This document shows positions 1,210 through 21,800 of a DNA stretch of 64,000 nt, one piece after another. Every line of letters starts with the position of its first letter. Within the stretch, counting starts at the first letter, position 1. Made by a program: the position numbers and the translations under genes. This DNA is from Oikopleura dioica. Its lineage: Eukaryota > Animalia > Chordata. The stretch is from contig OU015569.1 in assembly GCA_907165135.1 (NCBI GenBank), positions 7,378,001-7,442,000 on the forward strand. The letters run 5' to 3'. The notes beneath the pieces were generated by a model. That model was not told where the DNA came from. It made no database searches and saw nothing but the letters and a program-made list of their open reading frames with translations.

Positions 1210-2674
1210 ACATACGCGAATTGACCCCTCGAAAATTGTACATTTATTACATACTGCCAAATATACTTCAATATTTAGTTTTAAACAGCGTCGCTTGATA
1301 TGAAGAGTTGAGAAAATTTCAAATTAAAAGTTACAATTTCAAGCCCATATTTCCTGAATCTAACAGATCGTTGAGGAGTTCTATTGCCAGGCGTTCTACT
1401 GCCAACATTGATTCTACCAAATGAGATGAGTTCCGATCTCCTCCGTTTCTGAATTTCGCGAGATTTTCGATAATTTGCCGAAAAATTCAGAAAGAACTTC
1501 ATTAGTTTTCAAGATCGCTCTATAAATAATTGAACAGTATCAGTTCTTGAAAACCAAAATATATCATATACATCGTCATAAAAAGCAACACTAGCGCTGG
1601 AGAATAAAGCACTTTAAAATCATTAAAATAAAATAATGCAACTCAAGCGCACCAAAAGTATAAAGGCATCCCTGAAAGAAATCAGCAGGATCTTCAAACT
1701 CCGCCACGTCCTAAATAAGAGTAAGGCTAGATTTTCGACTAGTAAGCAAATATCTTTTTTACTGAAGATTCTGTCGTTTGTAAATTCGAAGCTTCCTCTA
1801 GTTCAAAATTCATAACAAAGAGTGTTTTTAAAATTGTGCTTCTCTTGAGAATATTTTGATCTAAATCTGTCTTCCTCGACTTTCGGGTATTCAAGGCTCG
1901 CTGCTACGCTTCTGCTGTCAATTACTGTTAAATCAAGCAGTAGGGCAATATTTAGAAGAGGATTACTCAGACTCGATATTCAACAGTACATACAAGATAA
2001 GAGTACACGGCCTTGGACGTGAGAAAAAACCGGTTATGAACGACTCGTCATCGCTCCATTCTATTCGTCTGTTTAGATTGGAAGAAATAGTTATATTTGC
2101 TAATCTCTTCTACGAGTAAAGAACTTATAGAATTGAAATCGACTGAAAGAAAACTGAGGAAAGAGCTTTCCCGAAACTTGGAAGATCAGAAAAAAGTCTG
2201 TACAGCAATCAAAGGAAGGGAAAGACTGGCATTCCTTCATTATTTAAAAAGCGATCATAGTTAGCCCTTGAGAAAGTCGACGAACATGACTTGAAAGATG
2301 TTGAAAGAAGGGGAATACGACTACAAAAAGAAATCTTGTCCTGCTCAAGTCGAAAACGAAGACACTCGCAAGAAACCAGGATCTGCGCCAATTGTTCAAC
2401 TCAGTTCATAAATCATGGACAGTATGTTTTCCCTTGTGGACATATGGGATATTGGCGGGATTCAAATTGAAATTATATTATTTTAAAATTAAACATTATT
2501 TAATATAATTAATTTAATCAAAAGTCGTTTATGATATCAATTGATATTTATCATTTTCGGAATTCATTATCTCCACTGAAGGTTCCTTCGACATAACTTA
2601 TTTGAATCTTTTCAAAAGGTACTGTATCTCTTGTACCCGTCCATCTGGCCTACAAACATTTTACCGGTACTGCC

Positions 2675-3213
2675 CAGTGTTTGAAATAATGGTCAAAACT
2701 CTCGTGAGCGAGTGAGCGCGAGCAGAGGCCCTCAGAACTTTAACACGAGTGAGCGAGCGCGAGCAGACTCTTTTGATTTTTTGGTGAGCGAGCGAGCGCG
2801 AGCGCAGATACCAGGATTTTTCTATGAGTGAGCAAGCGTGAGCGCTCGCTCGCTCGCTTACGCTCACTCGCAGCTTTTCAACAACGTTTTCATTGAGTGA
2901 TTTCTTGAAAAATTCTAATACTTTTAAATTTGAAGGACTTTTAACTATCATAAGTTAATCATGTGTATTCTTACGAGATTAAAAGATAATATCAAGATAG
3001 ATTTCATAAATATCAAATGATTTTGTGATGAGGGTGACTTCACTAAAAATAACCGTGAGCGAGCGTGAGTGAGCGCAAGCTGGGACCTTGGAATTTTATG
3101 GTGAGTGAGCGAGCGCGAGCAAAGGTTCTCGAAATCAACGTGAGTGAGTGAGCATGAGCGCTTGCTCACTCGCTCGCGCTCGTGGCTCGCGCTCACCATT
3201 TTTTCAAACACTG
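2675..3213. mobile_element. Non-autonomous hAT-type DNA transposon (MITE-like), 539 bp
   Basis: TIRs CAGTGTTTGAAATAATGGT / ACCATTTTTTCAAACACTG (1 mismatch). Perfect 8-bp TSD GTACTGCC at 2667-2674 and 3214-3221. Internal arrays of GTGAGCGAGCGCGAGC in both orientations. An 8-bp TSD with CAG termini is typical of hAT. Confidence 0.9.
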
Positions 3214-3467
3214 GTACTGCCCGTCTTGCAGCATCGAGTTTCACCTTTCCCAACTAACGTCTGTCAAGCGACACTATTTTCGTCCAAGCAACAGAGGATG
3301 ACCTTTTGACAAGATCTTTCTCCAGCCAAGAGGAAGCTTCAAATTCGTACAACTATTTTTTTCACAGAATAAATCGCAGTTTTGTTGAATCATCATTGTT
3401 ATTAGAAGTGCAGAATCAGAAGTTTTTGAAAGTTTTAAAGTCTTGCTGGTATCGTAGAATGAATAAT

Positions 3468-4640
3468 TTACGTATAAGCATTTGTTTTACGCCTCCTGGT
3501 CGTGCGAGTATTAGTCTTCTTTTTTCGCTTTGTTCCATACTCTTCGTCATCCGACTCGTCGGAATTCGGGTTGTTCGCAAGATGGCTGAATTACAGATCA
3601 GATTCAGGCTTCCGAGCATCTTTTGAAGTGCTTAGAGGAGCGAGAACTTACCGTGCGAGGATTTCGTCGAGGGCAGTGTTATCGGGTGTGTTTGGTCTAT
3701 CAGGAGGGTCGCTTGGGCACATGGTTTCTAGTGATGGGCGCGTTTTGCATCGGAACTTTGTTGATGGGTAGGAAAACACCTAAATAAATATAAAAAGTCA
3801 ATATAAAACGTCGCTCAGTAACATAAGGATACGAGGGGCCGCTCAAGTCATACAGAAAACAAAGAAATGAATGCAATATTAGCTAGGCAAATGTATAAAG
3901 CGAAACATTCGTGAAGGAGCTAACTTTTAGTCCTCGCGTGGCAAAATCCTACTAGCAGGACAAATGTCTAGTAATCGGGAGTGTGGTAAGCGCAAGTTCG
4001 CCCGTCTGTTCACGAGAGGTTTCACGAAGCGCCTCACGGCAGCCCTGGCTAAGGGGATCAGCGCCACGCCATCATTTTTCACGAATTCCGTGAACACGGG
4101 CGGCGGCGGCAGTCACTCACGCTGGCCGTGAGCCCAGTCAGCAAGAGACCACCGCCGACACCACCTCCAACACTAGATGAAAGTACTTAAACGAAGGCGC
4201 TCCAATTGGTTTACTATACCTCCCAAAACCATGAAAACTAACGAATAAGATTTAAAAACATAACTAAAAATTATCGTACAAGAATAATTTGTACAATTTT
4301 GAAAAGCGCTTTTGTTTGTTGCTTCAAATAGTACTGGTTAGCCTTAGTAAATTATATTTTGGTCGAAATGTTTGATTTCATTTCTCACTTGAGTATTTTT
4401 CTGGGCTGGTTGGCGATGGTGGGCACATCTTTTTACTTGGGCAATCATCGACACTTCGGACTCTCGCTCGGCGACTTTTCTTCGCGCAGTTCTTTCCCGC
4501 AGCATCCTGAACCAGTTAAAATCTGCTGGCGTTTAGAAACAGTACCGGTTGTTGTAGATTCGGCACGATTCGAGGGCGTCCTTGTATCTGATGTTGTCCC
4601 AGTTGCGACTCGTAACTACTTTTCCGCTTTCGGAGACCAT
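3468..4640 (-). CDS. d4/DPF (Requiem) family protein, N-terminal domain only, about 152 aa, 4 exons
   Basis: Spliced product MVSESGKVVTSRNWDNIRYKDALESCRIYNNRMLRERTARRK...MIAQVKRCAHHRQPAQKNTQVFSYPSTKFRCK...DEILARHLANNPNSDESDDEEYGTKRKKK...AYT*. It matches the Requiem_N pattern of DPF1/2/3 (YKDA.E.C..YN.R; Q[LV][YF]SYP...[WF]R.K). All three introns are GT-AG; one is 609 bp (3780-4388). Confidence 0.75.
4010..4131. promoter_or_regulatory. TCACG/CGTGA homotypic cluster 1 (7 copies), in the DPF-like gene intron
   Basis: Pentamer at 4010, 4022, 4034, 4079, 4089, 4117, 4127 in a GC-rich island. Confidence 0.55.
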
Positions 4641-5381
4641 ATCAACTCTAAAATAATAGTCAATAATTATGAAATGAATCACGGGTTTGTTAATCTATTC
4701 AGATAATGTTAAATACACTATTCAATTTATTACAACAATTTTAAAGTAAAAACGGTTTCAATGAGTTTACAATTTAAAACTAAGGAAGAAAGAACAATAA
4801 GAGTAATATTTTCCAAATCGTGGCAGCATTTCTAGCAACTTACAGTGTTCTCTTTGAAGGAAGGCTCTAATTTGGTTTTCGCGGTGTTACGTGATAGAGT
4901 GAATGAGACAAAGGCGTCGTCACTAATTCGTTTCTCTTCTTTTTTTTTATTTTTTGGCGAGTTCGCGCTCAGCATTCACTTTCTCCATTTAAACAAGGAA
5001 GAAAGACAGGCAGCAGGAAAGTTTCTGGGTTTCTTTGACGGCGTGGCTCACGCTGGCCGAGGGCAGTACACGGCTGAGATAGTCGACGCTTCTCTTCTCG
5101 TGCGTTTTCTCTCCCTGCCAGGGCGAAGGAGGCGATTCGCGAAGGAAATCTAGATCGCTTTTTTTCTTTCCCTCTCTCTCTTTTCTTTTTGGCCCTGAGG
5201 GCGGTCGAGGGCAGCGTTAGAGCCGCCACAAGTCCCTTGAGGGGCAAACACAACGCGAGCGACGAGGTCCACTCCGTCAAGTCCCTCCTCGGGTGACGAT
5301 CTCACTCTGGGAGCCAACGCGCCCACGGCCAAAGCCAAAAAAAAGAATCGCCATTTTGGCCTATTTTCAAACGCGCCTTAA

Positions 5382-6070
5382 GGGATCCCCCCCTGATTTT
5401 TCAAATCTTTATGACGGGTCTACCAGTGCCATATTTAAATTCCTCGTTTCATAAGGATCATTTTGATGGTTAATTGTACCCGATTACAAACATCGTTACC
5501 CAAAATTTTTGCACTTGAAAATCGCGAAAATGCATGTAAAATGAACTTAGCGTGAAAATCGTAATTTTTTTCGACTTTTCAGTGTCATCAAAAGTAGACG
5601 AATAAGGGGTCTATCGAAAGCCTAGAATGTACTGAATAAGAATATAATAACCGCACTAGATATTCTGGCCACAAATTGGCGCTAGAGAGCAATTTGAAGC
5701 TAAAAAAGGGTAAAAATGGCTTCAAAAAGTTGTTCATTAGAAATTTCTTCTGTTACTTTATCAATCACACTTATCATGCATGCAAATGTAGCCAAGGGTC
5801 TAAACTTCATAACAATGAAGTAATATAAGGAATGCATAAGGCCAGAAAAAAGTAGATACAACTTGAAAATGGCCGAAAATGGCCGTTTTTGGCAACCTAA
5901 GTCACTTTGACGGCTTCTAATGCATAAGTGAATCTTATAACTAGGGGCTTATCGTGCATGCGTTTGCTCGTCAAGAAACGGGCTTCAATTTGAGCCCCTT
6001 TACAGACCCACACGCAAGACGAGTAAAAAGTAGATAGGGGTCAGAGTTGGGAAAATTGGGGGGGGATCCC
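5382..6070. mobile_element. Non-autonomous TTAA-flanked DNA transposon with GG...CC termini (Kolobok-like), 689 bp
   Basis: TTAA at 5378-5381 and 6071-6074 flank inverted termini GGGATCCCCCCC.../...GGGGGGGATCCC with further partial match (TGATTTTT vs CAATTTTC). No ORF inside. Confidence 0.8.
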
Positions 6071-6745
6071 TTAAATCAAGAGGTTGTTTCAAAAATTTAA
6101 AACAATTACATTTTTTGGAAGTTCATACCTTCGTCTAGGTTTGAATAAAGCTAAATTAAAAAATTCAAAAAAATCATTACGATATACCATCGTCGAACCT
6201 AGGATCTGAAAATCTTGAAAAATGAGTTTTTAAATAAAAATAATTGTCTCTCGTAATAAAATTAATAAATTCTAGCAATAAAATTAACTTTTGTGAAGGA
6301 TGAAAAGCTTTCACATTTAATTTGAGAAAAAGTTCTTCTTCTGGTGGTCACTGAGAGGGGTAGATATTTTGATATCAAACTACTTTTTTACCAAAATCGA
6401 CTTGCTGAATTCGTCCGAAATTTTAATTGCAGAGTTCATCAAAATCTACGACCCAAAATTCCAAGTTGGAATTTCGAGGTACTCAATTTCTTTTCTGCGA
6501 ATTCCTGACAAATGAGAGGATTTCGAATTTTTATAGCTTGAAAGAAAAGATTTTTCTGATTTGTGGAAGCTAAAACTCAACTAGCTTCTAATTTATAAAT
6601 TTTAATTCAATTCCCAACAAGCCAATTCATGACAATTTCCACAAGTCCCTGCTTTCGCCTCCTTGAATACTGGAGTCGTAAAAAGAGCTGTAGAAAAGAG
6701 CGCGCAGCTTTTGAATAGTCATTTTCGTCATGTCAAAAATCAGAT

Positions 6746-6790
6746 TCACGAGCGCGGTTCACGAGGAAAAGCTCTCACGCGCGTTCGTGA
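6746..6790. promoter_or_regulatory. TCACG/CGTGA cluster 2 (4 copies in 45 bp)
   Basis: Pentamer at 6746, 6759, 6775, 6786. Confidence 0.5.
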
Positions 6791-7608
6791 GCGCAACTGC
6801 GCGCTCCCTTCAACGCCGCGCAAATTTATTATTTTTTCTTCTTTTTCGATTTTTGCACTTTTAAATTCACGTTTTTAATTTTATAATGTCTTCCTTTCCT
6901 GTTAGTCGCGCTAAGAGCCGAATTATCCCACGGTTATCAACGATGAGAAAAAGTTTCAAAAAATTCTCACGTGATTTGAAGATCTTCTAAAAGAAAACAT
7001 TAATAATTTGTCTATTCAGGTTTTCGTTGAGAATTTCTTCGTAATTTTTGATCAACGAAAGCGAGACTGTACAAAAAACAGAACAAGATTAAGGCGATCA
7101 GGAACCTTTTGAAATTTTATATGACGATTAAAGAGAGTCTTATTTTTTGCGTTAATTGATAGTGGCAAATTTATTAAAATATTTTGACAAAGGTGTACTA
7201 CGAAAAAAATTGGGCTACTACATCATCACTGGCGCGGTTCATCTTTAGACGGTCTGGTGGGAAAACGCCGCCACCACACGTCGCAGGGTGTAGTGGAGCT
7301 GAGCTGTGTTGAGTGATCAGCCACAATCAACTCCCAAAGATCGCGAAAACCAATTTCACAGTCCTGAAAAACAACCTGTTCCTCTTCAGAAGCAGCAGAT
7401 ATGGAGCTCAAAATAATTCCCTTCTCCTCCTGATCTTGAAATTCATTCCAAAAGTGTAAATTGTCAAGTTCTGTCACCGAAGTTCGGAAGAAAAAAATCG
7501 ACCCTTGCGAAAGATCCTAAGAGCTGCAGTTCATCACTCAGCTCTAGAAGAGGACTTGTCCACTTCCTCATTACTGGGATAAACACCTTGAATGAAAGAT
7601 GAAGATCT

Positions 7609-7778
7609 CGTGAAGAGTGGAAGTCTCACGAAAGGTGCCAAATCGAGAAGAAGGGTGATGTTGCTTCCAACTGGAAAGAAGGTCGAGCTCCAGCTCCGAA
7701 AGAAAGAGCTGAGACGGCGGTCTCACGTGACTTTGCGGTTTAGCCTGCTCGTGAGTCCTTTCGTGAGTCGCACCGTGA
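7609..7778. promoter_or_regulatory. TCACG/CGTGA cluster 3 (7 copies)
   Basis: Pentamer at 7609, 7626, 7723, 7726, 7750, 7762, 7774. Confidence 0.5.
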
Positions 7779-8199
7779 ACCGCAATTTCGGCCTCCGGAC
7801 TTAGCTGCCAGCAAGTACTACTAGACAGAACTTCTGATGCAGTTAAATTATTGCTAAGCAAAAATCCCTCTCTTTAGGGATGAATAGCTAAAGCGAGCGC
7901 TTTCTCTCAAAACACTCAACCCAAATAGCAGACAAAATTTCAAAAAAAAAGCGAAACTGAACAAGTTTTTTAGGAAGAAATGATAAACAATTTATATAAA
8001 AAAATTTTAATAATTAAGTAAGAATAATTAATTCGCAATTAAATTTGTGGTAATTTGTTTTTTAGAAATATTTTGATAGATAAATTTATTATTTTAGAAA
8101 GTCCTAATACAGTCAGAGCCAAAAATAAGGGACACCAAGATAAGGAACTTTTTGGCGCAAAATGATGAAAATCTGCGGCACGATTTGTATCGGCTGCTC

Positions 8200-8300
8200 C
8201 TGGATCGCGCGGAATCCTGGATCGCGCGGATCCCGGATCGCGCGAATTCCTTGATCACGCGGATCGGGGGATTCAGGATTCCGCGCGATCCAGGATTTCG
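8200..8300. repeat. Tandem 17-bp unit (CTGGATCGCGCGGAATC-like), about 4 copies plus one inverted copy; mirrored at 9745-9840
   Basis: Directly visible degenerate tandem units inside both arms of the foldback element. Confidence 0.85.
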
Positions 8301-8452
8301 AAAAAAGTCAGAAATTTAATTTACAATTTTGCTTTTCTTATCAAAAATGGCCAGAACTGTTGTTAAACCATGTAATTCTTATCTTTTCAATTCAGAAATG
8401 TAAGAATATCAAATAAGTAGAACCTTCAACGAAGTCATCATTCAACTATTTT

Positions 8453-8779
8453 TAGTTGTTTGATTTCCGGGACCTACTTTTATGCGCAGGGATAAGCAGC
8501 GCGCAAGTTCCATTTAGAGGCGAGAAATGGATGGCAGTGACTGATTTTCGTAGGGACAGATTAGGATAAAAATTGAGAGCTATTCTTATTTAAGATAAAT
8601 TATTTATCATCATTAACGATTCCCTTCATTTCCTTCTCTTGATTATTTTCAAAAAATTTCTCAAATAACTGTCTGTCCCTGCGAAAATCCTGGACTACCT
8701 TCCATTTGTCACCTCCAAATGGAACTTGCACGCTGCTAATCCCTGCGCATAAAAGTAGGTCCCGGAAATCAAACAACTA
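8453..8779. mobile_element. MITE (about 325 bp, about 105-bp TIRs, TA-flanked) nested in the left arm of the foldback element
   Basis: TAGTTGTTTGATTTCCGGGACCTACTTTTATGCGCAGGGA is a perfect 40-nt inverted match to 8740-8779. It is absent from the equivalent point of the right arm. Confidence 0.9.
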
Positions 8780-10129
8780 ACAATCAGGGTGAAAAATGGC
8801 GTGGGATATTTGTGGGATCTCGCGCGCGCGGTGAAAAAACCTCCCAGGGCGTGTGGGAGGTTTTTGGCTTCTCACAGAGCGTGGGGGAGCTAAATTTTTT
8901 CGCGAGGCGAAGTGACTTTACGCTTTTCTCAAAGCTTGAATGTAAAAAGGGACTTTCACGGTGAAAAATGCTTTGCTCTTGTTGAAAATTTAGTTATAAA
9001 TATAGATTTTCTAGCTGATTTCAATGATACCAAAATAACTGCAGCATCATTTCCCTCTATAAGTTATAGACTATAACTGATCTGACGTCCTGAACAAAAA
9101 TTAAATGCTTGACAACATCTGATGATGGATTCTAGGGTAGAAAAAGAATTATTTTCACTGTTTATGACTGTATAACGAAAAATTTGGTGATTCTTCGCGT
9201 AAATTTCGCGGATCAGAAGTTGTTTTTTCTTTTAAATTAGTAAGCTAACATGATCCATTTTACTTCCGGAATTTTTTTTTGTGTTAATCACCCGGTACTA
9301 TTTGCATCTGATTTCGACTACATGGTCACAATAAGCCCCCACTGAGATTACGGCGCGCTTATGCTTTTTGGGCTCGCCGCGCATCGCGTAAAGCACTAGC
9401 CGTAGTGCTCGTGCGCTCCCAGGCTCTCTGTGAGCTCACAGCGCGTGGGTGATCTCGATTTTTAGGTACCTCACAGAATTTTCTGTGATAATGGCGCCAC
9501 CTCCCACGCGCTCTGGGAGGTTTTTTTGCCGCGCGCGCGAGATCCCAGGCAAATCACGCGCCATTTTTCACCCTGGGTTAGTAACAATAGTTGAATGATG
9601 ACTTCGTTGAAGGTTCTATTTATTTGATATTCTTATATTTCTGAATTGAAAAGATAAGAATTACGATGTTAACAATAGTTCTGGCCATTTTTAATAAGAA
9701 AAGCAAAATTATGAATTGAATTTCTGATTTTTTTTTTCGAAATCCTGGATCGCGCGGAATCCTGAATCACCCGATCCGCGTGATCAAGGAATTCGCGCGA
9801 TCCGGGATCCGCGCGATCCAGGATTCCGCGCGATCCAGGAGCAGCCATTTGTATCATACAATCATCATTGATTTCAATGTTAAATTGAACCAATTTAAGG
9901 GACGTTTTTCGAAAATTTCAGAGCAGAAAAAGTCCCTTATTTTGGACTCCGACTTAAAAAAAAAAGAATAAAAAAATTCAAATACAATTAAAATAAAGTA
10001 AATCGGATAATTAAAAAAATAAACATAATTTCTATCGGTATAGAAGAAGGAAGATGAGGAAAAGCGAAATTCTTCGAGAGTGGTGCTTAGTGTGGTCGAA
10101 TTTCCGATTTCTTCTGTGCGTGTTCGGCG

Positions 10130-10167
10130 TCACGTGAACGCTTTTCATCTTTTCACGGCGCTCGTGA
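10130..10167. promoter_or_regulatory. TCACG/CGTGA cluster 4 (4 copies in 38 bp)
   Basis: Pentamer at 10130, 10133, 10153, 10163. Confidence 0.45.
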
Positions 10168-11007
10168 GTTGCGCGCTTTCTAGCGCCACCCTTGCAGTGA
10201 GCGCGCGCGCACCCATTACATCGCGCAATTTATAAACGCTTTTCTGTTTACCAACTTTCATGTCAATTCTAGCTTTTATACCACAACCTAAAGGTTCAGT
10301 TCAAATCTCTGCTTGTGCGATTTAAAGTCTTTCATTGATCATCAATTATGCTAGATTAACTCGTGTCTTAAAAAATGCACCTAAACCCAATAATCACTAT
10401 TTTCTATTGTTCATTCTTAATGACAGTCAGAAATGGTACTTTGTGAACCGAGAATAAATATACAGTGTTTAATGTATTGACAAAAAAATGATATTTTCTC
10501 GGTAAATCCTGACCCCATGTTTCTTGGGCGAAATTTGAAGTTGTCGATATTTGGTAAAAAAAAAATACCCAATAGCTGTCTCTGATCGAAGAAAAGATTA
10601 TATCCCTTTAATTTATTTATTTTATGAAATTGAAGCTTATTTTTTTACAAAAAGTCTACAACGACGTTTTTTTTTATGTTTCTATCGATATAAGTTGTCG
10701 TTGACAAATTCAAAGGAGCGAAATTAGAGGTTCGAATTCCAGTAAAGCTCCAAATCATCGTTCAAAGTTTGAAATCAGTCAATCGTTCGACTTCCCCTTC
10801 TGAAAACTTGTCAGAGAGTTGTTAGATAGCTTTGTCCTTTGAATTTGATTTGTACTCCTCGAAATCGCCATGAACCTCATGAATGCTGCCACTAGAATCA
10901 AGCAGATGAGGGAAAGGAGAGCGATGGAATGAAGAGCAATGGCGTTTGAAGGGAGCTATTACAAAGTGCGTTTCGGCGTTGCGAGCGGCGTCGCGCGCTT
11001 TTTGACT

Positions 11008-11193
11008 TCACGAGCGCGTTCAGCCGCTCGTGAGCGCGCTGGCCGTGATGCAACCGGGACTTCCGTGAAGAGCATTTGCGGCTCACGATGCGTGAGTGGT
11101 TCGGCCGCGCTCGCGGCGTCTCGTCCGCCGCCAACTCTTTCACGGGCCCTTTTCACGGGAAGCCTTTCACGGACTCAAAACTCGCCAATCACG
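11008..11193. promoter_or_regulatory. TCACG/CGTGA cluster 5 (10 copies in 186 bp)
   Basis: Pentamer at 11008, 11029, 11044, 11064, 11083, 11091, 11140, 11153, 11167, 11189. Confidence 0.6.
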
Positions 11194-11541
11194 ATACACA
11201 CCAATAACACGCGCACACACATCCACTCAAACAGACATTAACTCCCATCACCAAAAGAGGCCGCAGTTTTTTTCGTATTTTATTTCGGCTCTAATTAGAA
11301 GCGATCGGCGCGTGAGAGACTCTCCTCCAGAAGCCCAAAGAAAAGCGAAAGTCGAGTAAATGACTCAAGAAGAATCTTCTCTTTGAAAATAAAACTATCT
11401 GAAAGGTAACTTTCGCATTTTGAAATCGTCATTGTTGAACTTTGAATTAAATCATTTTTTCTAATTTTTGCTTTATCAAAGCTATCTCCAATAATTCTCG
11501 CTGGTCAGCCTGCTAAGTAGCGGCGAAACTAGCCTAAGAGT

Positions 11542-11563
11542 TCTCTCTCTCTCTCTTTCTCTC
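11542..11563. repeat. Short (TC)n microsatellite
   Basis: TCTCTCTCTCTCTCTTTCTCTC. Confidence 0.6.
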
Positions 11564-12815
11564 CCGCTCAATGTACCACACTCGATCACCAGACCTAAAT
11601 GCTCGATGCCGGATATTTTCATTTTTTTTTTCACTAAAAATCATTCATTTAAAATTTCATGCGCGAAATTTCCACTTCGATGCGTTCTTTTCTTTTTTGA
11701 AAGTTTGGACTTTGCGGCGCTCTCCGAATTCTTCTATTCGTCAAAACGGATCGTTTATTCACATCTATTCCATAATCTCCAATTAATTCTACTCTTCAAT
11801 ACTCTCGAACGATAGAATCGTTGGTTTTTGTTTTGAGGAGAAAATGAAAATCGTATTCGAAAATTTATCGAAGATCGGCTTGTTTGAATTTCTATCGATT
11901 TTTGTTTGCAAAGAATGAAAACGTAATTGGGCTAGTGAAATTGATGGAATGAAAAATTTAACCTGTAAGGGTGTAAGTTTTGAATCCAGATCGTGTTTTG
12001 TTTGCATAGATGGAAAGGGTTGAACTGCGGAGCGAGTTGTCATGGATGAGTAGAGTATCCGAGACGAGGAGTGCAAGAAGAGTGATGGTGATGCAAGTGT
12101 TTTTGCGGAATGTCTGCTGATCCGATACTGCTCCTAAATTGAATTCCTGTTAAATAGCGCGTCCACTGGCTTTCGCTCCCACAATCGCGAAAACCTTCAC
12201 ACCGAATTAAAACGTTTTTAATTTGATATTGTTGTCTGCAAGTTCTTCCTCGCCAAGTGCTTCCTTCAGTAAGTAGTTCTGACAAGTTTAATGAAGAGAG
12301 CCTCCGAATCGAGGCCAGGCTGGGCTTGTAAGCGCTGACGATTTGCGCGGCGTAAACAATCGGAAAATTTTCGGTATCCCGTTGGCTTATTCCGGTCATG
12401 GATCAATAAATTTGGACTTTTTGGCGGAGCAGCTCTTCACATGCAAACCACAATTTCGCAGCGAGAATTGAAAACAGAGACTTCTTTTTCTGACGAAATG
12501 ACTTTCTGCGTAAGCGCTAGCTGAAGAGTGTGCGAGAAGTTTTTCACACGTAAGAAAATAACGAGCGTTGAGATTTATTTTTAATAAGTATGATTTTAAA
12601 TTCAAAAGGTACTTTTTGCGAAAGAAAATTAACAAGGTGTAATCAAAGGGAGAAGTCGTTATGATGGAGGCTTAATTTGGTGGAGTTGTTTTGGCGGTGG
12701 AGTTACGGGTTATTGCGCCCCTTGGCATTTTCGCGTGTCTGTCTTTCTGCTTGTGAAATGTGAAATTCGCGGACCGAACCACTTTCGACCGACGACGCTC
12801 CGGGGTGCCTCATTT

Positions 12816-13124
12816 TCACGAAGTGCGCTTCACGGCGCCGTGAATGGAAGGCCTCCACCGCTTTTGGCGAATGCGGCCGTTTCTACTTCTCCAAGTGGAT
12901 TATTTCCACTACTGTACCGCAGGAGTCGCTTTCACGGGGCAGTCGCAATGAATCGATATAATCCCCTTGTCTAGTAAGATGCGAATATTTATCCCTGATT
13001 GTGGCCAGATCGCAGTCGGGAAATAGAACGGGCCGACAGATTCTCTCTTTTTCGCTACCTTCTATTTCTTTCACGATCACGGACCTCGTGAGCGCCCGAA
13101 CTGCGGCGAGCGATCCTTCTCACG
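12816..13124. promoter_or_regulatory. TCACG/CGTGA cluster 6 (8 copies), about 0.5-0.8 kb upstream of the CHD start; probable promoter region
   Basis: Pentamer at 12816, 12830, 12839, 12932, 13071, 13077, 13087, 13120. Confidence 0.55.
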
Positions 13125-13658
13125 GATATGAAAAATGTGAAATGAAAAAACCACCATTTAACTCGGGGCAAAAGCAGATTATCAACTGAACACGCCAAGT
13201 CAACCCCTTTTTTTCTGACAATAATATGTCTCCAATGTCGAATTTCTTCTAGCAGAGAAAAGAAGCAGTCGTTCAAAAGTAACGTGTTTGCGTTTGATAG
13301 AGTCCATTCAGGTTTGGGCTACTTTCTTTTGAGCAATCTAAACATGAGTTTCATTGCAGAAAACAATTTGTCCAAAAACGAGCGTTATTTTTGCTAAAAA
13401 TAATTCAACACAGATGATAATCGAGACACAAATACCATAATAGTTTTCATGATGTCATATCAACTTTATGCTATTCGGAATATTCATGCTTATTCATTGA
13501 AAATCTTTGTCTCAGGGAATCCCCGTGATTTCGCAATAATATTATTATTGTTTTGAATTCAGTCCAAAAGATATCTGACGAGACAGTAGCTTAGACAGTA
13601 TTAAGACAAGTCATACAAATAATCCTGATAAAATCATCCTCCTAACCATATCTTTTAG

Positions 13659-15422
13659 ATGTCCTGGCAAGGTGGAATGCCACCGGGCCATGGGTGGCCA
13701 CCAACTCACCATGGCCAGCCTCCTAACATGATGGGCATGGACCAAAATGGATATCCTAGTTATCCACCTTACAGTCAACAGAATGGAGATAATTGGGGTC
13801 AACACCATCCAGGTAGAACTAATTTCAAAATTATTTGTTTACGAATGCAAGAGAAATATTGTGGAAATAATAATCGAATCAAGTGATACATTTTTAAAAT
13901 AGGGTTTCCTGGCGGGCCCGAGAATGGCGCCCATTACCCAATGACAAGTCAACCTGGTTTTCCTGGACAGCCGTATCCTGGAATGCCTGGGCCGAATCCA
14001 TACGGAATGGGTGGACCAGGTTTTCCTGGTGGTCCCGGTCAACCATACGGCCACCCAGGCTTTCCACCGGTATCAATGGAGGGCTCGATGGGACAGATGG
14101 GTTATCCTCCGATGCCTTCAGCGAGCTTTCCTGGCCCCAACCCTTCAAATTTTACGCCAACTTCTCAACAACCGCAGCGACCTCGTCCAAGCTCAACGAA
14201 TGTGACATCAGTTTACAAGCAGTCGATGGCAACACCTACACCTAGCCATCCACATCCACCAGGCGTCTCTCCGAATCCCATGTTCAGTCAGGCAAATGCT
14301 CCTCGCAACACATTCCCGGGAGCACCCATTCCTCAAGCACCAAGACCTCAAGCTCCGCAAGTGCAGCAAGAATTACGAGCGCCCTCCCCTGCTGCTCCCG
14401 TGGGTTCTGCACCGATGCCCGACTTTAGTTTCAATAATCGAGGTGCCCCTGCACCAACTACATATTCCCGCGCCCCAGCTCCCACACAAATGAATGGAGC
14501 ACCCCCAGCTTCAACACTGCCTCCAAAGCCACAAGAATCTTCGTTTCATTCTCTAAGTAGCGGGCCTCCACCGATGTCAGTTGCTCCAGGAGCAATCGGA
14601 CGCCAACAGCCTCCTCCTTTAACTCGGCCTCCACAGCCTGGAGGATTTTCAGCACAGCTTCAATCACCTCCGCCTCCCGCTGTGAATCAGCCACTTCCAC
14701 AGCAGTCAACTTCACAAGTACCACCACCACCACAACTAGCTGTAGCGCCACCAACTGCAGCTCCCGTACCGGCATCGCCAGCGTTGAATCAACCACAAAC
14801 ATTACAAGCCCCTCAAGCTCAACAGCAACAACATGTTCAGAAACCAACAGTCCAGCCTCTTCCGGAGCCAGTTCAAGATCCCATTCCCCCAATCAACCAA
14901 CAAACCCCTAATATTTCCCAAGCACACAAACCAGTAGCACCAGTAGGAGAGCCACCAGCAGTTGCCCCTGAGCTACAAGCAGATTCTCCTGTACCGCCGA
15001 AACCAGCTGAAGAGACTTCTCCTTCAGTTCCCGCTAGTCCACCCAAGCCTCCACAGTTGCAGCCAAAACCTATTTCTCCACAAGAAAAACAGGAGAAAAC
15101 CGCAGTTGAAACTGGTCCACCAAAGCTTTCTCCTCCAAAGTTGGCTCATCCTTCAATTGCAAGCGGCGGACAAGCCGAGACACAACCAAGCAACGTATCA
15201 AAGGTCCCGGAATTCTCGGACTCAGAGGAAGACACAGATAAAACTAACGATGTTGATGATATCGCTGCTAAACTTTCTTCTGAAGATGAAAACGACAAGA
15301 AGGAAAATCTCGATCCTAATTTGGAGAAAAACGAGAAAACGGCACCAGAAAATGGTGTCCTTGAGGAAAGGTCTTCAGCTAAAAACACAACCGAAAATTC
15401 TGACGAAGACGATCAGGAATGA
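13659..15422 (+). CDS. Pro/Gln/Gly-rich low-complexity exons; probable N-terminus of the CHD7/kismet gene, or a short separate product
   Basis: ATG directly follows an acceptor-like TTTTAG. Exon 13659-13812 splices in frame via a GT-AG intron to 13903. The long P/Q-rich ORF ends in an acidic tail and TGA at 15420-15422. CHD7 and kismet have P/Q-rich N-termini. Confidence 0.75.
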
Positions 15423-15815
15423 GTTAAAATTATCTATGGTTATTCAAAGTGCAAATTGTTTTTATAGCATTAAATTGTTAATATCTATATATATATATTA
15501 ATATAGATATCGTATGTAACATACGGTATGTTCGTTTATAAAATCGTTCAAATATAGATATCGCTTGATAATTAACGCGGTAGATAGAGCTTACTTTGAA
15601 TATTCAAATAAATTACTGTTGAACATAAGAGAACATTTTTCGGATGAATACATTTTTAACGTTTGAAAGTATATTTAGTCAAAGTTACTTTCACATACAC
15701 TGAACCTTATCAATCCGACCTATTATAACTCAAATAAGGAGGCAGAAGACACTAGGGAAAAAGACTTCTGCTCGAATCACAACTGAAAGAGAACTCGTCG
15801 AGGGATAGCTCCAAA

Positions 15816-18800
15816 ATGGAGATCGATGAAAGCGAACCAGTAGAAGAACCTGTATCCGAATCTAACGGCGTAGAGGAAACACCCGCTGTCGAAATGAGCC
15901 AAGAACCCGAATCCACCCAGAATCCGAAGAAAAGAAAACGTAGTAAAAAGGAGAAGAAATCAGAAGCACGTGGAATTACTAGAGAAGCTGCTGCAGCAGC
16001 TGCAGCCGCTCTGGTGAGCGATGCGGATGTCGATCCTTATGGAAACTACAGAACATCTGATAGTAACTCAAATTCCAACGACGGTGCTAACGATGAGGAC
16101 TTTGATATAAATGATCTGAGAGCTGCATCACCTGATGCAGTTCCACAGAAAAAGTCTCAAAGTCGTCGTGGTAAACCTAAAGTTCCAGCTACTATCATCA
16201 ATTCGGCCAAAAAGAAGAAGAAATACGACTATGACGACGAGGATGAAGGAAAATCGAAAAGCAAAAAGAAGAGGAGAAAAATTGAATCGACTGAAGATGA
16301 ATTTATTTCTCCTGAAGATCTTATTGAAAAACGTCGGTCGGGGAGGTCATCTCGAGGAGCCCCCAAGAACTACGATGACAATGCAGTTCCGAACTTCTCT
16401 GATGGTGATGCAGATTCTGATGATGATGAACCTGTAAGAAAGAGAGGTCGTAAAAAGAAGGAATCCGTCGATACTTCCGAAGATGGTGTCCAGGAACCAG
16501 TGGCAGAAGTCGCAGAAGAACCTTTGATTGTTGACAAAATTCTGTCGCACAGGATTGTCAAACGTAAAAAGAGCTCCGAACGCTCGGATGAGGAAAGCAA
16601 TGCTGAATCAAAATCTGAAGAGGCCAAAAAAGAACCCGAGAAAAGGCCAGACGAAGAACCCGAAGAAGAGGAAGAGGAATTTTTTATCAAATGGAAAGGG
16701 TACTCTTACATTCACTGTGTCTGGCTTTTCAAGGATGAGATTTTTGACCCGCGCTTTGATCAGAAGATGCGCAGATACTTCAGCAAGTTGGGTGCGACGA
16801 ACGCGCCTGATCCGGACAACGAGGATCTGTTTAATCCGGACTTCGTAATTGTCGATCGAGTTCTTGATGTGGTGGAAGGTCAGGATGCTGAATCTGGCAA
16901 CGATACTCGCCATTTCCTCGTGAAATGGTGTGGTTTAGCGTACGATGAATGCACTTGGGAATTAGAAGTTGACGTAGACCAAGTCAAAATAGAGTGCTTC
17001 AAAAAGTACAACAAAAGGAAAGCATACAAACGACCATCCGAAAGACCACCAATAAGTCAGTGGCGTAAGCTCGAACATCCGCAACGATTCAAAAATGGTT
17101 GTGAACTTCGCGAATACCAAGTCGAAGGTGTTTCATGGCTGCTTTTCAATTGGTATCAGAAACGAAATTGTATTTTGGCTGATGAAATGGGTTTGGGAAA
17201 AACTATCCAAAGTATAACCTTCATCCAGAAAATTTACGAGACGAATCACAAAGGCCCGTTTCTGATTGTTGTTCCTCTATCTACTGTTGGCAACTGGATT
17301 CGAGAATTCGAAACGTGGACTGATCTAAACGCAATCGTATACCACGGTTCAGCACAATCGAGGCAAATGATCCATCAGTACGAATTATACCAACGTGACA
17401 AAAAAGGATATCCTAAAAGAGGTAATACTAAAATTTAATAAACTTTTTTATTCTTAAAAAATAGGTGATTTCCGATTTGATGCCTTGATCACGACATATG
17501 AAATGATCGTCGCCGACATTCCAGAAATTCGTAACGTTAACTGGCAACTGATGATTATCGACGAAGCTCATCGCTTGAAGAACACCAAGTCAAAGCTTGC
17601 TGAAAATTTGAAGTGAGTAATTATCCGCTGCCGTGTTGTACTTTGCGTAGTCGTCAGTCGATAACCAAATTTATATTCATCTCAGTGCTTCATTTTCACG
17701 GTCGCTTTCACGGCTCGTGAGAAGCGAATCATGAAAACATACCTGACGAGACAGTGATGCACAGAGTCTATTTATCTGTCATAACTCACTATGCCGTCTT
17801 TAAACAGAAAACAAACTCAAATTTGTTTAGTCAAGGGTGCTGAAATTTACCCCAATAACACAATTTCATACTGGTCAATCAGAATTCTCACGCCTTTACT
17901 TTAGGAATATGCATATTGAGCATAAGGTTCTCTTGACTGGAACGCCTCTTCAAAATAACATCGAAGAACTCTATGCACTCCTCAATTTCATGAATCCGAC
18001 AGACTTTTACGACATCGGATACTTCATGCGAGAGTACGGTGTCCTCACCAATAAAGACCACGTAGATAAGATGCAAAAGGTTCTGAAACCGATCATGCTT
18101 AGAAGACTTAAGGAAGACGTGGAAAAATCATTGGCTCCAAAAGAGGAGACGATCATTGAAGTCGAGTTGACTAACATTCAAAAGAAATACTACCGAGCTA
18201 TTCTTGAACGCAACTTCGACTTTTTGTCTAAAGGCGCCTCGAGTGGAAATGTCCCAAGTTTGATGAATACTATGATGGAGCTTCGGAAGTGCTGCAATCA
18301 TCCATTCTTAATTAAAGGAGCCGAAGATAAAATTCTTGATGAGTACAGAGCAAAAGGCGAAGTCGCTGATCCATTGACAGCTATTGTGCAAGCATCTGGA
18401 AAGATGGTCCTCATTCATAAGCTCTTGCCGAAATTGAAGGCTGGTGGACATAAAGTTCTCATCTTTTCCCAGATGATCAGAGTGCTCGATATTTTGGAGG
18501 ATTATTTGTATCAAATGAATATGGGCTTCGAGCGATTAGACGGAAGAATTCGGGGCAACGATCGACAGGCCGCTATTGACAGGTTTTGCAAAAAGGACTC
18601 CGACAGATTTGTTTTCCTTCTTTGCACCCGGGCTGGTGGTCTGGGAATCAACTTGACTGCTGCAGACACTGTTATCATCTTCGATTCGGACTGGAATCCG
18701 CAGAACGATCTTCAAGCTCAAGCACGTTGCCATCGTATTGGTCAAAAGAAGGAGGTCAAAATCTACAGACTTTTGACTAGCAAGACATATGAGCGTGAAA

Positions 18801-21800
18801 TGTTTGATAGAGCATCACTCAAACTTGGGTTGGATCGAGCTGTTCTTCAAAGGTATTTATGGCTTTGCTTTTGAATACGAAATAACCTCTTTTAGTATGT
18901 CTGGAAGTTCTGGAAAAGACTCTGGCGGTCCAATGAACTCATTGTCTAAAAAAGAGGTGGAGGACTTGCTCAAGAAGGGTGCATACGGTGCGCTTATGGA
19001 CGATGATGATGCGGCCGAAAAATTCTGCGAAGAAGACATTGATCAAATTCTTTCTAATCGCGCCACCACTATTAAACACGACGGTGGAGTTAAGGGTAGC
19101 ACATTCTCAAAAGCTACTTTCGCTGGTGCTGCTGACAACCGCATGGATATTGACATAAATGATCCTGACTTCTGGGAAAAGTGGGCACGAAAGGCGGACT
19201 TAGATCTTGATGCTTTAACTGCTAATAAGCTGATTATCGAGCAACCCCGTGTTCGGAAGCAAACACAACGGTACAATCCAGAATTCGATGAAACTGCGCA
19301 CATTGAAGGCATGGAAGGCTCTGATTCTGATTCAGATGGAGGAACTGGAAAGAAACGGCGAAATGTTGGCTGGGGACGAAAGGAATCTTTCAAACTCCAA
19401 AAGGGACTACTCATGTTTGGATGGGGACGCTGGCAAGATATTTCTGACCATTGTCAGCTCTCCAAAAGCTTTCCTGAAAAGGAAATCGAGGAAGTTGCGA
19501 GAGCGATTCTATCTCTAGCTGCCAGTTGTTACAACGGAGACGATAAAGTTAAGCAATTTATTTGGGAATTGATAACTCCACCAGAATTTGCTCACGAACT
19601 TCATCTCCACAGCGCACTTCATCAGAAACAGCCCACGAAGAAATCTAAGCGTGGTCGAGATTCAGAAAGTCCTCCTCCACTTGACGAAGGTCGCGAATGG
19701 GTTATTCAACTTGATGGCCTTTTGGTCGATGATCAATTCCGTAAGCACGTGGTTACTAACACCAACAAGCTCCTTGGTCGTGTTCGCGTTTTATCATATC
19801 TGAGAACAGAAATACTTGCAGACTGGCTAGATCACATCAAAGATAATGTTCATTCTACCGAATACGAGCTCGACGTTCCTAATATCGAAGGTGAACCACC
19901 TGTTCCATGGTGGGACGAGGAAGCCGATAAGTCTCTTCTCGTAGGAATTTTCAAACATGGCTACGATAGATATAGCTTGATTAGAAATGATCCGAGCCTT
20001 GTGTTCGTCAAAAAGGTTGGCCCAGCCGATGATAAGGCTCTAATGGCAGATCTAATGGAGGGCGAATCTAAGCCTGTTAACTCAAGCACCGTTGATGGAA
20101 ATAACCCGGCTGACAAAGAATACAAACCAAAACATCGAAATGTCTTCGAAGATCAAGAACAAATCATGGAGGCCTCCGCAAGTACTGCCAATAATGCAGA
20201 AGAAAAAACTGGCGAAGAAAAAGACAATGCTACTGTAAATGGCGACGGTCCAAAAGATTCTGAGGAGGGAATCAAAGAGGGCAAAGAGGAAGAGAAGGTT
20301 GAAGTTGAAACGAAGGTTCAACCAAAATATGAACCCTGGCCGTCGATTCCAGATCTCAACAAGCGATTCCGCATGATTGTTGCTGCGTATCAGCGTATTT
20401 TCCGAAGAGCTGCTGCTCGAGCTCAAAGAATGAACAAAAATCGAATTCAGAGACAGATTACGGAACGTTGGACTAAACGCGAGGAGTCTGACTTCTATCG
20501 TGCTGTGAGCACTTTCGGCACCGAAATGCTGCCCAATGGAAGTTTCAACTGGGAAAAATTCCGCATGGTTGCAAAACTTGACAAAAAGACCGACACTAGT
20601 CTTACTAATTATTACATTGCATTCCGAGCTATGTGTGAACGGACTTGTCGCCGCACGACGATTCCCGATGAAGATTTACCTGCTGTGTATGTGGAACAAA
20701 TTTCTGAAGATCGAGCAAGTAGAACTCTAATGCGTATCCAGCTTCTCGATCGCATCAGACGAGAATGTCTTATTCATCCTCAGCTTGATGCAAGATTGAA
20801 ACTCTGTCAAAAATCACCAGATCTACCTATTTGGTGGAAAGCGGGTATTCACGACAAAGAATTGCTTGTAGGTCTCCACAAGCACGGACTTTCCAGATGT
20901 GAGATCCATATTCTTAATGATTCGGATCTTACGTTCGGAGATGTTATGAAGACTGCCCAAAAGTCGCTCCTCGGATCAAGGTTAAAACAAAAGAGGAGCC
21001 AGTTGAAATCAAGGAAGACGAAACTCCCGAGAAGACTGACGAACATATGCCTGAAGACAAAAACGAACTGGAGAAAAAGCCGTCTGAAACAGAAAGCAGT
21101 CCGAAATCAAAGCCTCCTGCAGATGAAAATCAATCTTCTGAAGAAAAAATGGAAGAAGATACGCCCAAGGATACTCCACAAGATTCCGAAAAAGAAATGG
21201 AAACGGATGAGCCCAAATCTGATGTTAAACCCATTGAGGAGCCTAAAAATCCTGAAGAAGGTACAGAAGAGGTCAAGGATGAAAAAGCGGGGCAGCCAAA
21301 AGAGGAAGTAAAAGTCGAGGAGCCCGTTCCCGAAGGACCAGTGGTTGAAGTTGCTACTGAGGAGGAAAAACAACTGCTTGAAGCCGAGTTCATCCAACAG
21401 CAGTCACTTAACAGGTGCTGTATTTATCATTGTGGTGTCAAAGCGCACCTCACGTAAGATTTGAGGCGAAATCTAACTAGCTGGACATTAGTGTCTGGTC
21501 CGGGCGAAATCGATTCAGAAGCCTCGTATTAATATACGCCTTTGAATAATTAACTCCTTGATACAAAGAATAAGCAATTTGGAGGGACATAAGTCGAATC
21601 GCTGCTGGATCGATGAACTGTCCCACCACACTCTTCCACTAATACAAAATTGTCATCTTAATTTAATATTCCATCCCCAAGCAAGCGCTAATTCGGCAGT
21701 ATATGATGATTATATACGTGAAAGCATTCTTGTTTGTGGCTCTAAAAGTCTGACCATTTAACACGGCACTTCTAATCGCTTCAATATTCTTCCGCATTAC

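Follow-up and report, generated by a model that had tools for sequence, protein, structure and literature searches.

The window, i.e., the whole 64-kb stretch of DNA that was analysed, contains a plus-strand CHD gene whose exons encoding chromo, SNF2 and helicase-C domains were located by domain matches at 15816–18874, and whose orthologues carry HTH_CHD6-9, so that the gene is of the CHD6-9 type (here referred to as CHD7). RNA reads and orthologous sequences define a non-coding exon 1 at approximately 11040–11406, with 11042–11406 on the plus strand being a lower bound on its extent, as the upstream end lies either there or further out. This exon is supported by an RNA joint linking 11252 to 13657 and by loose read ends whose letters match positions 3835–3855 of the orthologous Bergen contig (L003), while its donor is inferred at 11406|GT from the Bergen donor (L003 3857|GT). 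Exon 2 (13659 to approximately 13812, plus strand) opens with a start codon that immediately follows the acceptor AG, and its first residues, MSW..GG.PPG, are common to the window and to a metagenome contig (L001, position 6446). A DPF-like gene, for which the match to Pfam DPF1-3_N is weak (E=0.025, below the Pfam cut-off), is transcribed divergently from CHD7 on the minus strand; its first coding exon (4546–4640) encodes MVSESGKVV...YKDALESCRIYNN and ends at a GT donor, and its second exon starts at 4007.

Around the CHD7 gene, a motif count identified 43 copies of the pentamer TCACG (or CGTGA) distributed across seven islands, none of which is assigned a strand, and this recount reproduced exactly the total, the number of islands and the per-island counts and spans of the original prediction. 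Island 1 (4010–4131; seven copies) lies in the DPF-like gene, at the 3' end of its first intron, in agreement with the cluster previously assigned to a DPF intron, and is composed of three direct copies at 12-bp spacing and two inverted pairs with 5-bp spacers. Islands 2 (6746–6790; four copies in 45 bp), 3 (7609–7778; seven copies including one TCACGTGA palindrome) and 4 (10130–10167; four copies arranged as a TCACGTGA palindrome and an inverted pair) lie between the DPF-like gene and the known CHD7 exon 1, with Island 3 bordering a conserved non-coding block (7693–7890) and Island 4 being located within another (10079–10257). Since the non-coding exon 1 is spliced to the ATG exon at 13659, Island 5 (11008–11193; ten copies, at and inside exon 1) falls in the promoter/5'UTR, while Island 6 (12816–13124; eight copies in a 0.5-kb conserved non-coding block) falls in intron 1. 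The earlier description of a 9-kb interval upstream of CHD7 is thus accurate for islands 2–4, and is revised by the RNA reads and orthologues for islands 5 and 6. Island 7 (17696–17720; three copies) sits, as was proposed, in a CHD7 intron, namely the one that splits the SNF2 domain. The islands are roughly paired, at distances of 1.8–2.7 kb.

The density of these copies far exceeds the background, which amounts to 62 copies in 49 kb for the rest of the window, i.e., approximately one per 790 bp and close to the earlier estimate of about one per 700 bp. At the density found in the rest of the window, 12.3 copies would be expected between positions 4000 and 13650, where 53 are present (Poisson p ~8e-18). 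The window holds 126 copies, 50 of which have another copy no more than 40 bp away, whereas 300 dinucleotide-preserving shuffles (500-bp blocks) yielded 12.9 such copies on average and never more than 28; the densest 200 bp hold ten copies, as compared to 3.5 on average and at most six in the shuffles. The word therefore shows the local excess over composition-matched expectation by which homotypic binding-site clusters are defined, and no other dense cluster of it was found in the 64-kb window.

The islands are GC-rich, and CGCGC and AGCGC also cluster in this region, which would be expected if CpG-rich islands in an AT-rich genome simply accumulated many CpG pentamers by chance. This explanation is scarcely credible, as the islands contain 43 copies, whereas their own dinucleotide shuffles yield 3.4 (z 22), a comparison that is informative on specificity only because the islands were picked for TCACG. 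The other enriched 5-mers in the islands (GTGAA, CACGG, CACGA and CTCAC) all overlap TCACG, none of the unrelated CpG 5-mers exceeds z 5 in these shuffles, and the CGCGC excess derives largely from sub-repeats of a foldback transposon (8192–9846). Furthermore, what is conserved between species is the word rather than the CpG content. The concern that TCACG might be no more enriched than other CpG 5-mers in GC-rich islands is consequently dispelled.

A second possibility is that the islands represent a decayed repeat, either a degenerate minisatellite of 12–14-bp period or sub-terminal repeats to which the transposase of a DNA transposon binds. The direct spacing of 12–14 bp is reminiscent of short tandem units, genuine transposons with internal sub-repeats are located nearby (the foldback element and a MITE-like element at 2674–3214), and the islands are roughly paired. 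However, Tandem Repeats Finder (TRF) reports no array in any island at a minimum score of 30, and only a core of 5–9 nt recurs between copies, with differing spacers, on which grounds a tandem repeat or minisatellite was rejected. A dispersed repeat or transposon family was likewise rejected, since alignments among the islands and to the rest of the 64-kb window gave no match, and the islands have single-copy orthologues in other lineages that are conserved above neutral expectation. The island pairs are not bracketed by terminal inverted repeats, and there is no room for the foldback transposon in the Bergen orthologue: this element accounts for at least 1.65 kb of the interval and is lineage-specific, the corresponding Bergen stretch being far shorter. 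A repeat origin is thus very improbable, in keeping with the earlier view that the islands are neither a tandem repeat nor a single transposable element, and no degenerate repeat family to which they align was found in the window.

The clustered copies share a longer word, YTCACGR. The base preceding the pentamer (-1) is a pyrimidine in 43 of 50 clustered copies as compared to 46 of 76 isolated copies, and the base following it (+5) is a purine in 39 of 50 and 36 of 76, respectively. The same flank bias is found among the Bergen sites (Y at -1 in 29/32, R at +5 in 27/32), and a weaker one in two more distant taxa, where Y precedes 17 and R follows 21 of 26 sites and C occurs at +5 just once. 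Direct repeats show a spacing peak at 12–14 bp, inverted pairs are separated by spacers of 3–6 bp (8–11 bp from start to start), and three TCACGTGA palindromes are present among the islands.

Orthologous loci were compared from a second O. dioica cryptic species (Bergen, L003) and from two metagenome contigs (L001 and L007), which we take to be from larvaceans. The aligned CHD7 segment is approximately 78% identical between Bergen and the window, while the conserved non-coding blocks reach 80–97%. These blocks contain stop codons in all tblastx frames and return no Pfam match and no significant Rfam match; being at least as conserved as the neighbouring exons and lacking an open frame, they are conserved non-coding elements. 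Island 1 lies outside this comparison, as the orthologous contigs stop short of the region, and Island 2 has no alignable Bergen counterpart (L003 200–1424 holds a single site), and would be either lineage-specific or turned over. The remaining five, islands 3–7, have orthologous clusters in Bergen. Island 3 corresponds to five copies at L003 2465–2520. None of the DNA variants listed from two other DNA runs falls within 10041–10261, a segment that includes Island 4 and whose flanks are variant-dense. Island 5 corresponds to 11 copies in Bergen (L003 3495–3674), eight in L001 (4274–4706) and seven in L007 (5222–5411). The block holding Island 6 is 90% identical to Bergen over 517 columns with all eight sites conserved, and three similarly spaced sites are found in L003, L004 and L005 at the position of Island 7. 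Four sense-oriented copies of Island 5 precede or enter an ultraconserved, A/C-rich block of 70 nt in CHD7 exon 1 (11176–11245, plus strand), which contains two CCAAT boxes and one TCACG and is 97% identical in all four taxa, while identity to L001 in the coding exons of CHD7 is just 68–83%.

Within the aligned blocks, 23 of 25 TCACG sites are intact in Bergen, while arbitrary 5-mers taken from these blocks are intact in 54% of cases (p=5e-5, an optimistic value as the sites are clustered and not independent). The islands lie largely within longer conserved blocks that carry other information, and part of the site conservation is accordingly shared with the block. At the 10163 site, CTCGTGAG of the window corresponds to CTCACGAG in Bergen, the word having been rebuilt on the opposite strand by two changes. 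The upstream half of Island 5, which aligns poorly, keeps its site number (two versus three) with shifted positions. Although flanking sequences cannot be aligned in L001 and L007, TCACG recurs there just upstream of the ultraconserved exon 1 block, and it is still over-represented upstream of CHD7 in both of these distant taxa. By z-score against dinucleotide shuffles, TCACG ranks first of 510 pentamers in Bergen, third in L007 (where poly-A and ATATA alone rank higher) and sixth in L001, rankings that do not depend on the window from which the word was picked. Purifying selection therefore acts on the word itself across lineages, and the absence of conservation that would have spoken against a regulatory role was not encountered.

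Selection of this kind might also act on RNA, with the inverted pairs (TCACG, 3–6 nt, CGTGA) forming hairpins of 5–6 bp with variable loops, or with UCACG being bound by an RNA-binding protein that controls CHD7 splicing, stability or translation. Islands are indeed present in the CHD7 5'UTR, in introns and in a DPF intron; the Bergen-type lineage shows transcription of islands 4 (through its block at 10079–10257) and 5, and the four copies adjoining the ultraconserved exon 1 block are sense-oriented in all four taxa. There are eight inverted pairs with one stem sequence and different loops, in which pairing can extend to the Y at -1 and the R that follows CGTGA, and their variable spacing suits hairpin loops better than it does a rigid protein dimer. 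Orientation with respect to transcription is nevertheless balanced, with 26 plus and 20 minus copies, which fits recognition of DNA and not of RNA. Many direct-repeat runs (4010–4034, 7750–7774 and 11140–11189) have no pairing partner, the known exon 1 is downstream of islands 2 and 3, transcription having been seen only over islands 4 and 5, the strand-flipped site preserves the DNA word and not the RNA word, and TCACGTGA is unable to form a hairpin. Action at the RNA level consequently appears improbable.

Judging from these sequence comparisons, the islands are probably homotypic clusters of putative sites for a single sequence-specific DNA-binding factor that reads approximately seven bases, YTCACGR. 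Such a factor would bind in the CHD7 promoter and first exon, in the upstream conserved elements and in the first and a later intron, with one more cluster in the first intron of the DPF-like gene. Several packed sites in either orientation would favour cooperative, high-occupancy binding at each element, and cluster occupancy would in turn set CHD7 transcription and possibly that of the DPF-like neighbour. Comparable clusters of sites for Su(H), Bicoid or NK2 factors also consist of many copies of one short word within 50–300 bp, in either orientation and with diverging flanks, their copy number being kept through conservation and turnover in the promoter, introns and upstream elements of one regulator gene. 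A difference is that TCACG is not the site of any protein encoded at the locus, and there is thus no obvious autoregulation. The blocks also resemble the arrays of conserved non-coding elements in genomic regulatory blocks, as they are more conserved than coding sequence (97% for the 70-nt block) and are spread over a non-coding stretch that is unusually long for a compact genome. Unlike such arrays, which are usually heterogeneous, most blocks here share one short word, and the target is a chromatin remodeller instead of a transcription factor.

The original prediction had suggested that none of the Pax, NPAS4/dysfusion and Hes motifs explains all flank variants, and a tally of 44 sites bears this out, as none of the known motifs considered fits more than 19. 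Pax paired-domain sites were rejected because no site matches the extended pattern (C/G, followed by the WTSA part of a 14–17-bp site). The base at +5 is A in 19 sites, G in 16 and C in only three; read on the other strand as bHLH-PAS sites of ARNT partners such as NPAS4/dysfusion, 19 sites are TCGTGA, while CCGTGA is nearly as frequent (16) and GCGTGA accounts for three, a spread that a relaxed first base might accommodate. A Hes N-box or class C site (CACNAG or CACGNG) was rejected, as the required G at the last position occurs in 19/44 sites, little above composition, and so was the Su(H)/CSL site YGTGRGAA (3/44). The class-B E-box, or CLEAR-type TCACGTGA, recognised by the bHLH-ZIP proteins USF, MITF/TFE and MLX and by class E DEC, shares with TCACG a T-flanked CAC half-site and central G, and the CACGTGA core of two of the three full palindromes is kept in Bergen. 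A full class-B E-box (CACGTG) array was rejected, however, as the palindromes account for just six of the 44 sites and the other 38 are without a second half-site.

Since YTCACGR equals the T-flanked half of TCACGTGA, a bHLH dimer of class B, C or E with a CAC half-site, whose second monomer tolerates a variable half-site, is put forward as a tentative candidate for the factor, one that we regard as distinctly less likely to be right than wrong. Asymmetric dimers of the CAC type, combining a specific CAC half-site with a variable second half-site, have been documented (PMC8431614). Counting against this candidate are the inverted spacers of 3–6 bp, which extend beyond the span of a single bHLH dimer and would not be accepted by a rigid one. 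The sites of USF, MITF/TFE, MLX and SREBP have G or A at -1, in contrast to the T or C preferred here. CREB offers an analogy, though not the same word: alongside the full CRE TGACGTCA it uses the functional half-site TGACG, and the islands likewise combine few full palindromes with many functional-looking half-sites.

As a functional sub-case of the homotypic-cluster explanation, the same factor, bound at the promoter (Island 5) and at the distal islands 1–4, 6 and 7, might multimerise and tether these elements or recruit Polycomb-type silencing, which we consider unlikely, if worth entertaining. Clusters of the word mark the promoter and six further elements over approximately 14 kb and nowhere else in the 64 kb, as short, dense and orientation-independent arrays. 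The clusters have been kept while gene order was otherwise scrambled, across a split dated to around 25 million years by a preprint, if the window represents the subtropical Pacific lineage, as we infer. Clusters bound by fly architectural proteins and Polycomb recruiters (GAGA, Pho, Zeste and BEAF-32, the last via CGATA), among them GAGA-factor tethering elements and Polycomb response elements (PREs), are similar in that a dense, orientation-independent word of 5–7 bp marks promoter and distal elements. The fly words are different, however, and those systems act at many loci, while the TCACG clusters are known from the sequence of one locus. The earlier suggestion of a larvacean tethering or Polycomb-response-like code, like any use of the word beyond this locus, was not supported by the tests applied to the 64 kb. 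The same sequence picture would result if ordinary enhancers and promoters had one activator or repressor in common, and the DPF–CHD linkage was not seen in a distant taxon within the 10 kb of sequence there. Somewhat more doubtful still is the proposal that YTCACGR is recognised by an architectural factor that is specific to larvaceans, or strongly re-specified, and that marks and joins the promoter and distal elements of selected loci under long-range regulation; if true, it would explain the survival of this non-coding landscape in the most scrambled animal genome known.

Little cis-regulatory vocabulary has been described for the very compact and rapidly rearranging Oikopleura genome, and the word does not appear in the CAGE promoter study that was searched. 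CHD7-type remodellers are dosage-sensitive developmental regulators, which makes tight transcriptional control plausible. Should TCACG be limited to this locus, it would constitute an ordinary but unusually clean homotypic site cluster; should further loci be marked by it, the word would define a regulon or an architectural code. With seven elements of 25–300 bp, the locus represents an experimentally small system for a new factor–motif pair, and one that is useful for asking how long-range regulation outlasts genome scrambling.

The seven islands of the pentamer TCACG/CGTGA that had been predicted, containing 43 copies in total, were reproduced exactly by direct count, in both positions and numbers (islands 1 to 7, at 4010-4131, 6746-6790, 7609-7778, 10130-10167, 11008-11193, 12816-13124 and 17696-17720). 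The region 4000-13650 contains 53 copies, compared with 12.3 expected from the remaining window, where the background is approximately one copy per 790 bp (p ~8e-18). Furthermore, 50 of the 126 copies in the window have a neighboring copy at a distance of 40 bp or less, whereas dinucleotide-preserving shuffles in 500-bp blocks, which retain local composition, yielded a mean of 12.9 and a maximum of 28; the densest 200 bp holds ten copies, as against at most six in the shuffles. Within the islands, the 43 copies compare with 3.4 in shuffles of those same islands, and the only other enriched 5-mers are overlapping neighbors of TCACG. A composition artefact was rejected on the island-shuffle counts, and the specificity of this enrichment means that the possibility raised with the original prediction, that the word is no more enriched than other CpG-containing 5-mers of GC-rich islands, does not hold. 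A repeat or transposon origin was likewise rejected, in agreement with the original view that the islands are neither a tandem repeat nor a single transposable element: TRF found no tandem arrays in them, while a repeat finder and self-BLAST of the islands returned neither similarity among them nor extra copies in the window.

The clustered copies extend to the heptamer YTCACGR, with C or T at base -1 in 43 of 50 cases and A or G at base +5 in 39 of 50, a flank bias that is absent from isolated copies. Direct repeats are mostly spaced by 12-14 bp, while inverted pairs are separated by spacers of 3-6 bp, 5 bp being the commonest. Plus and minus orientations are about equally frequent (26 versus 20), and the palindrome TCACGTGA, which consists of two overlapping sites, occurs three times.

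Related loci were gathered by protein look-ups and one DNA-pattern scan. These comprise the Bergen O. dioica contig L003 (FN655174.1) and L008, which is of the same type; L001 and L002, representing a relative found in ENA metagenome assemblies, one of which carries a TARA label; L007, from a fourth taxon, a relative of L001; and L004-L006, which cover the gene body only. The CHD segment (exons and short introns) of the window is ~78% identical to that of Bergen at the DNA level where aligned, and the two would thus represent different cryptic species; according to a preprint, such O. dioica lineages split up to ~25 million years ago, with extreme scrambling of gene order. Outside exons, the window and Bergen align in blocks only, which include islands 3, 4, 5 and 6, as well as island 7 in its intron. 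Conservation among cryptic species had been proposed as a check, and islands 3 to 7 indeed have orthologous clusters in Bergen (5, 4, 11, 8 and 3 copies, respectively; those of islands 3 to 6 at FN655174.1 2465-2520, 3049-3080, 3495-3674 and 5540-5822), while island 2 has no Bergen counterpart. The non-coding blocks that align comprise 1833 positions at 83% identity; in them, TCACG is preserved at 23 of 25 sites, compared with 54% of arbitrary 5-mers (p=5e-5), and identity is 97.5% in the word versus 82% outside it. Of the two ‘lost’ sites, one reads CTCGTGAG in the window and CTCACGAG in Bergen, where the word has been rebuilt on the opposite strand. In the upstream half of island 5, which aligns poorly with Bergen, the number of sites is retained while their positions have shifted.

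The coding exons of the more distant L001 and L007 share 68-83% identity with those of the window, and upstream DNA can be aligned only over a 70-nt A/C-rich block of the non-coding CHD exon 1 (11176-11245 in the window; L003 3662-3730; L001 4693-4762; L007 5399-5467), which is 97-100% identical in the four taxa and carries two CCAAT boxes 17 bp apart. Immediately upstream of this block, L001 and L007 possess four to seven TCACG copies with unalignable flanks; orthology of island 4 to this upstream cluster is not claimed, as the alignment is unreliable. When all pentamers were ranked against dinucleotide shuffles, TCACG was first in the Bergen upstream region, third in L007 and sixth in L001, and the YTCACGR flank bias is also present in all three, if more weakly in L001 and L007, which constitutes replication in sequences that had no role in choosing the word. 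The island-7 intron (17604-17900) is absent from L001 (12087-12101), and a three-copy TCACG cluster sits instead in another CHD intron there (13394-13428).

The plus-strand ORFs at 15816-17438 and 17837-18874 encode chromo, SNF2 and helicase-C domains, to which the orthologues add an HTH_CHD6-9 domain, and on this domain content the gene is classed as a CHD6-9 (‘CHD7-like’) remodeller. The divergent, minus-strand neighbor has a coding exon at 4546-4640, which encodes MVSESGKVV...YKDALESCRIYNN and ends in a GT donor, and a following exon that starts at 4007 and continues the protein as ...RANLRLP. Its predicted product resembles the N-terminus of d4/DPF proteins, the Pfam match to DPF1-3_N being weak (E=0.025, below the cut-off). 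Island 1 occupies the 3' end of the intron between these exons. A good acceptor (ttttag/AGTTGATATG; 4640-4660, minus strand) precedes the DPF-like start codon by 8 nt, suggesting either that the transcript is trans-spliced to an SL or that it has a 5'UTR exon further upstream.

The public RNA runs X21 and X22 are 90-95% alike to the window, and the unaligned ends of their reads are identical to the Bergen contig; as Bergen-type data, they reveal exon connectivity and conserved transcribed blocks rather than transcription start sites or expression in the lineage of the window. These reads cover a transcribed block across island 4 and span 11042-11252, from where a junction leads to 13657. Bergen CHD exon 1 continues to a canonical donor (L003 3857/GT), the window counterpart of which would be GAAAG/GTAACT at 11406, while exon 2 has its ATG immediately after the acceptor, at 13659, an arrangement shared with L001. 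The exon 1 reads and the junction to exon 2 therefore identify island 5 as the CHD promoter/5'UTR. Islands 6 and 7 are intronic, the former in the 2.25-kb CHD intron 1 and the latter in the intron that splits the SNF2 domain. Bergen-type reads are also heaped at 15102-15127 and at 15216-15290 and seem to join 14881 to 15102 and 15127 to 15216, in a region that is a single long ORF in the window (13941-15422); these joints may reflect a lineage difference in exon structure or simply the limits of aligning diverged reads. Protein-coding exons beneath the islands were rejected, since Pfam searches of 26 ORFs and segments returned CHD domains and the weak DPF1-3_N match and nothing else, and every frame recovered by tblastx against the orthologues was interrupted by stop codons. 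Each DPF-like and CHD exon was searched individually; neither the N-terminal CHD ORF as a protein query nor an exact look-up of one window ORF gave a match. Non-coding RNA genes were also rejected, as Rfam over 1-20000 (E<=1) yielded only sub-threshold miRNA-like matches inside two transposons.

Several other elements occupy the region. A foldback-type transposon at 8192-9846 has 115-nt terminal inverted repeats (99% complementary) and holds nested inverted repeats and 17-bp sub-repeats (TCCTGGATCGCGCGGA); the conserved blocks flanking it are ~360 bp apart in Bergen versus ~2190 bp in the window, indicating a lineage-specific insertion in the CHD upstream region. A MITE-like element at 2674-3214, bounded by 20-nt inverted repeats (95%), is packed with about six GTGAGCGAGCGAGCGCGAGC-type units ~40 bp apart and accounts for a small CGTGA pair at 3054/3064. 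Two 28-nt inverted repeats (86%) that begin with TTAAGGGATCC lie 641 bp from each other in intergenic DNA at 5378-6074 and possibly mark another small DNA transposon. Six further non-coding blocks are conserved in Bergen (7775-7870 and 13095-13200, both nearly 100% identical, 5140-5256, 7240-7354, 12079-12191 and 12312-12474); these have few or no TCACG copies and stops in every reading frame, and probably represent additional regulatory elements within this landscape.

The original prediction that known motifs do not explain every copy was borne out by a tally over 44 counted sites: TCGTG (NPAS4/dysfusion) and Hes-type motifs each match 19, CCGTG 16, the full E-box six, XRE and Su(H) three each and extended Pax none. 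Pax, Su(H), XRE, Hes, T-box and full E-box were rejected, each misfitting most sites. TCACG corresponds to a T-flanked CAC half-site plus the central G of TCACGTGA, of which two of three copies keep the CACGTGA core in Bergen. Class B, C and E bHLH dimers often recognize one specific CAC half-site and bind a second, variable half-site loosely (PMC8431614). The half-site, the three palindromes and this documented looseness make a CAC-type bHLH dimer the leading, if tentative, candidate binder, with a likelihood of roughly a third; the binder could, with at least equal probability, be an unrelated or lineage-specific factor. TCACG, CGTGA and CACGTG are absent from the text of the O. dioica CAGE promoter study, and literature searches by sequence word found nothing relevant.

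The 7-nt word, its packing at about one helical turn and its use in both orientations, together with single-copy orthologous elements, retention of the word above already conserved surroundings, and strand flip and turnover, point to selection for a DNA-binding site and count against the alternatives of a repeat, a composition effect and an RNA signal. The predicted cis-regulatory role is thus well supported by comparative sequence evidence, while a Polycomb-like or tethering role is speculative. No further word clusters were found elsewhere in the 64-kb window or, beyond the orthologous CHD regions, in the other sequences retrieved, and the clusters may represent either a larvacean code, as originally suggested, or a feature of one locus. 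The elements involved would be the CHD promoter/first exon and the conserved non-coding blocks around it, at which one putative factor, acting through homotypic clusters of binding sites, would control transcription of the CHD7-like gene and perhaps also that of its DPF-like neighbor. The locus therefore appears to represent a conserved homotypic site cluster within an array of CNEs, a known type of system of which this would be a new case with a candidate motif.
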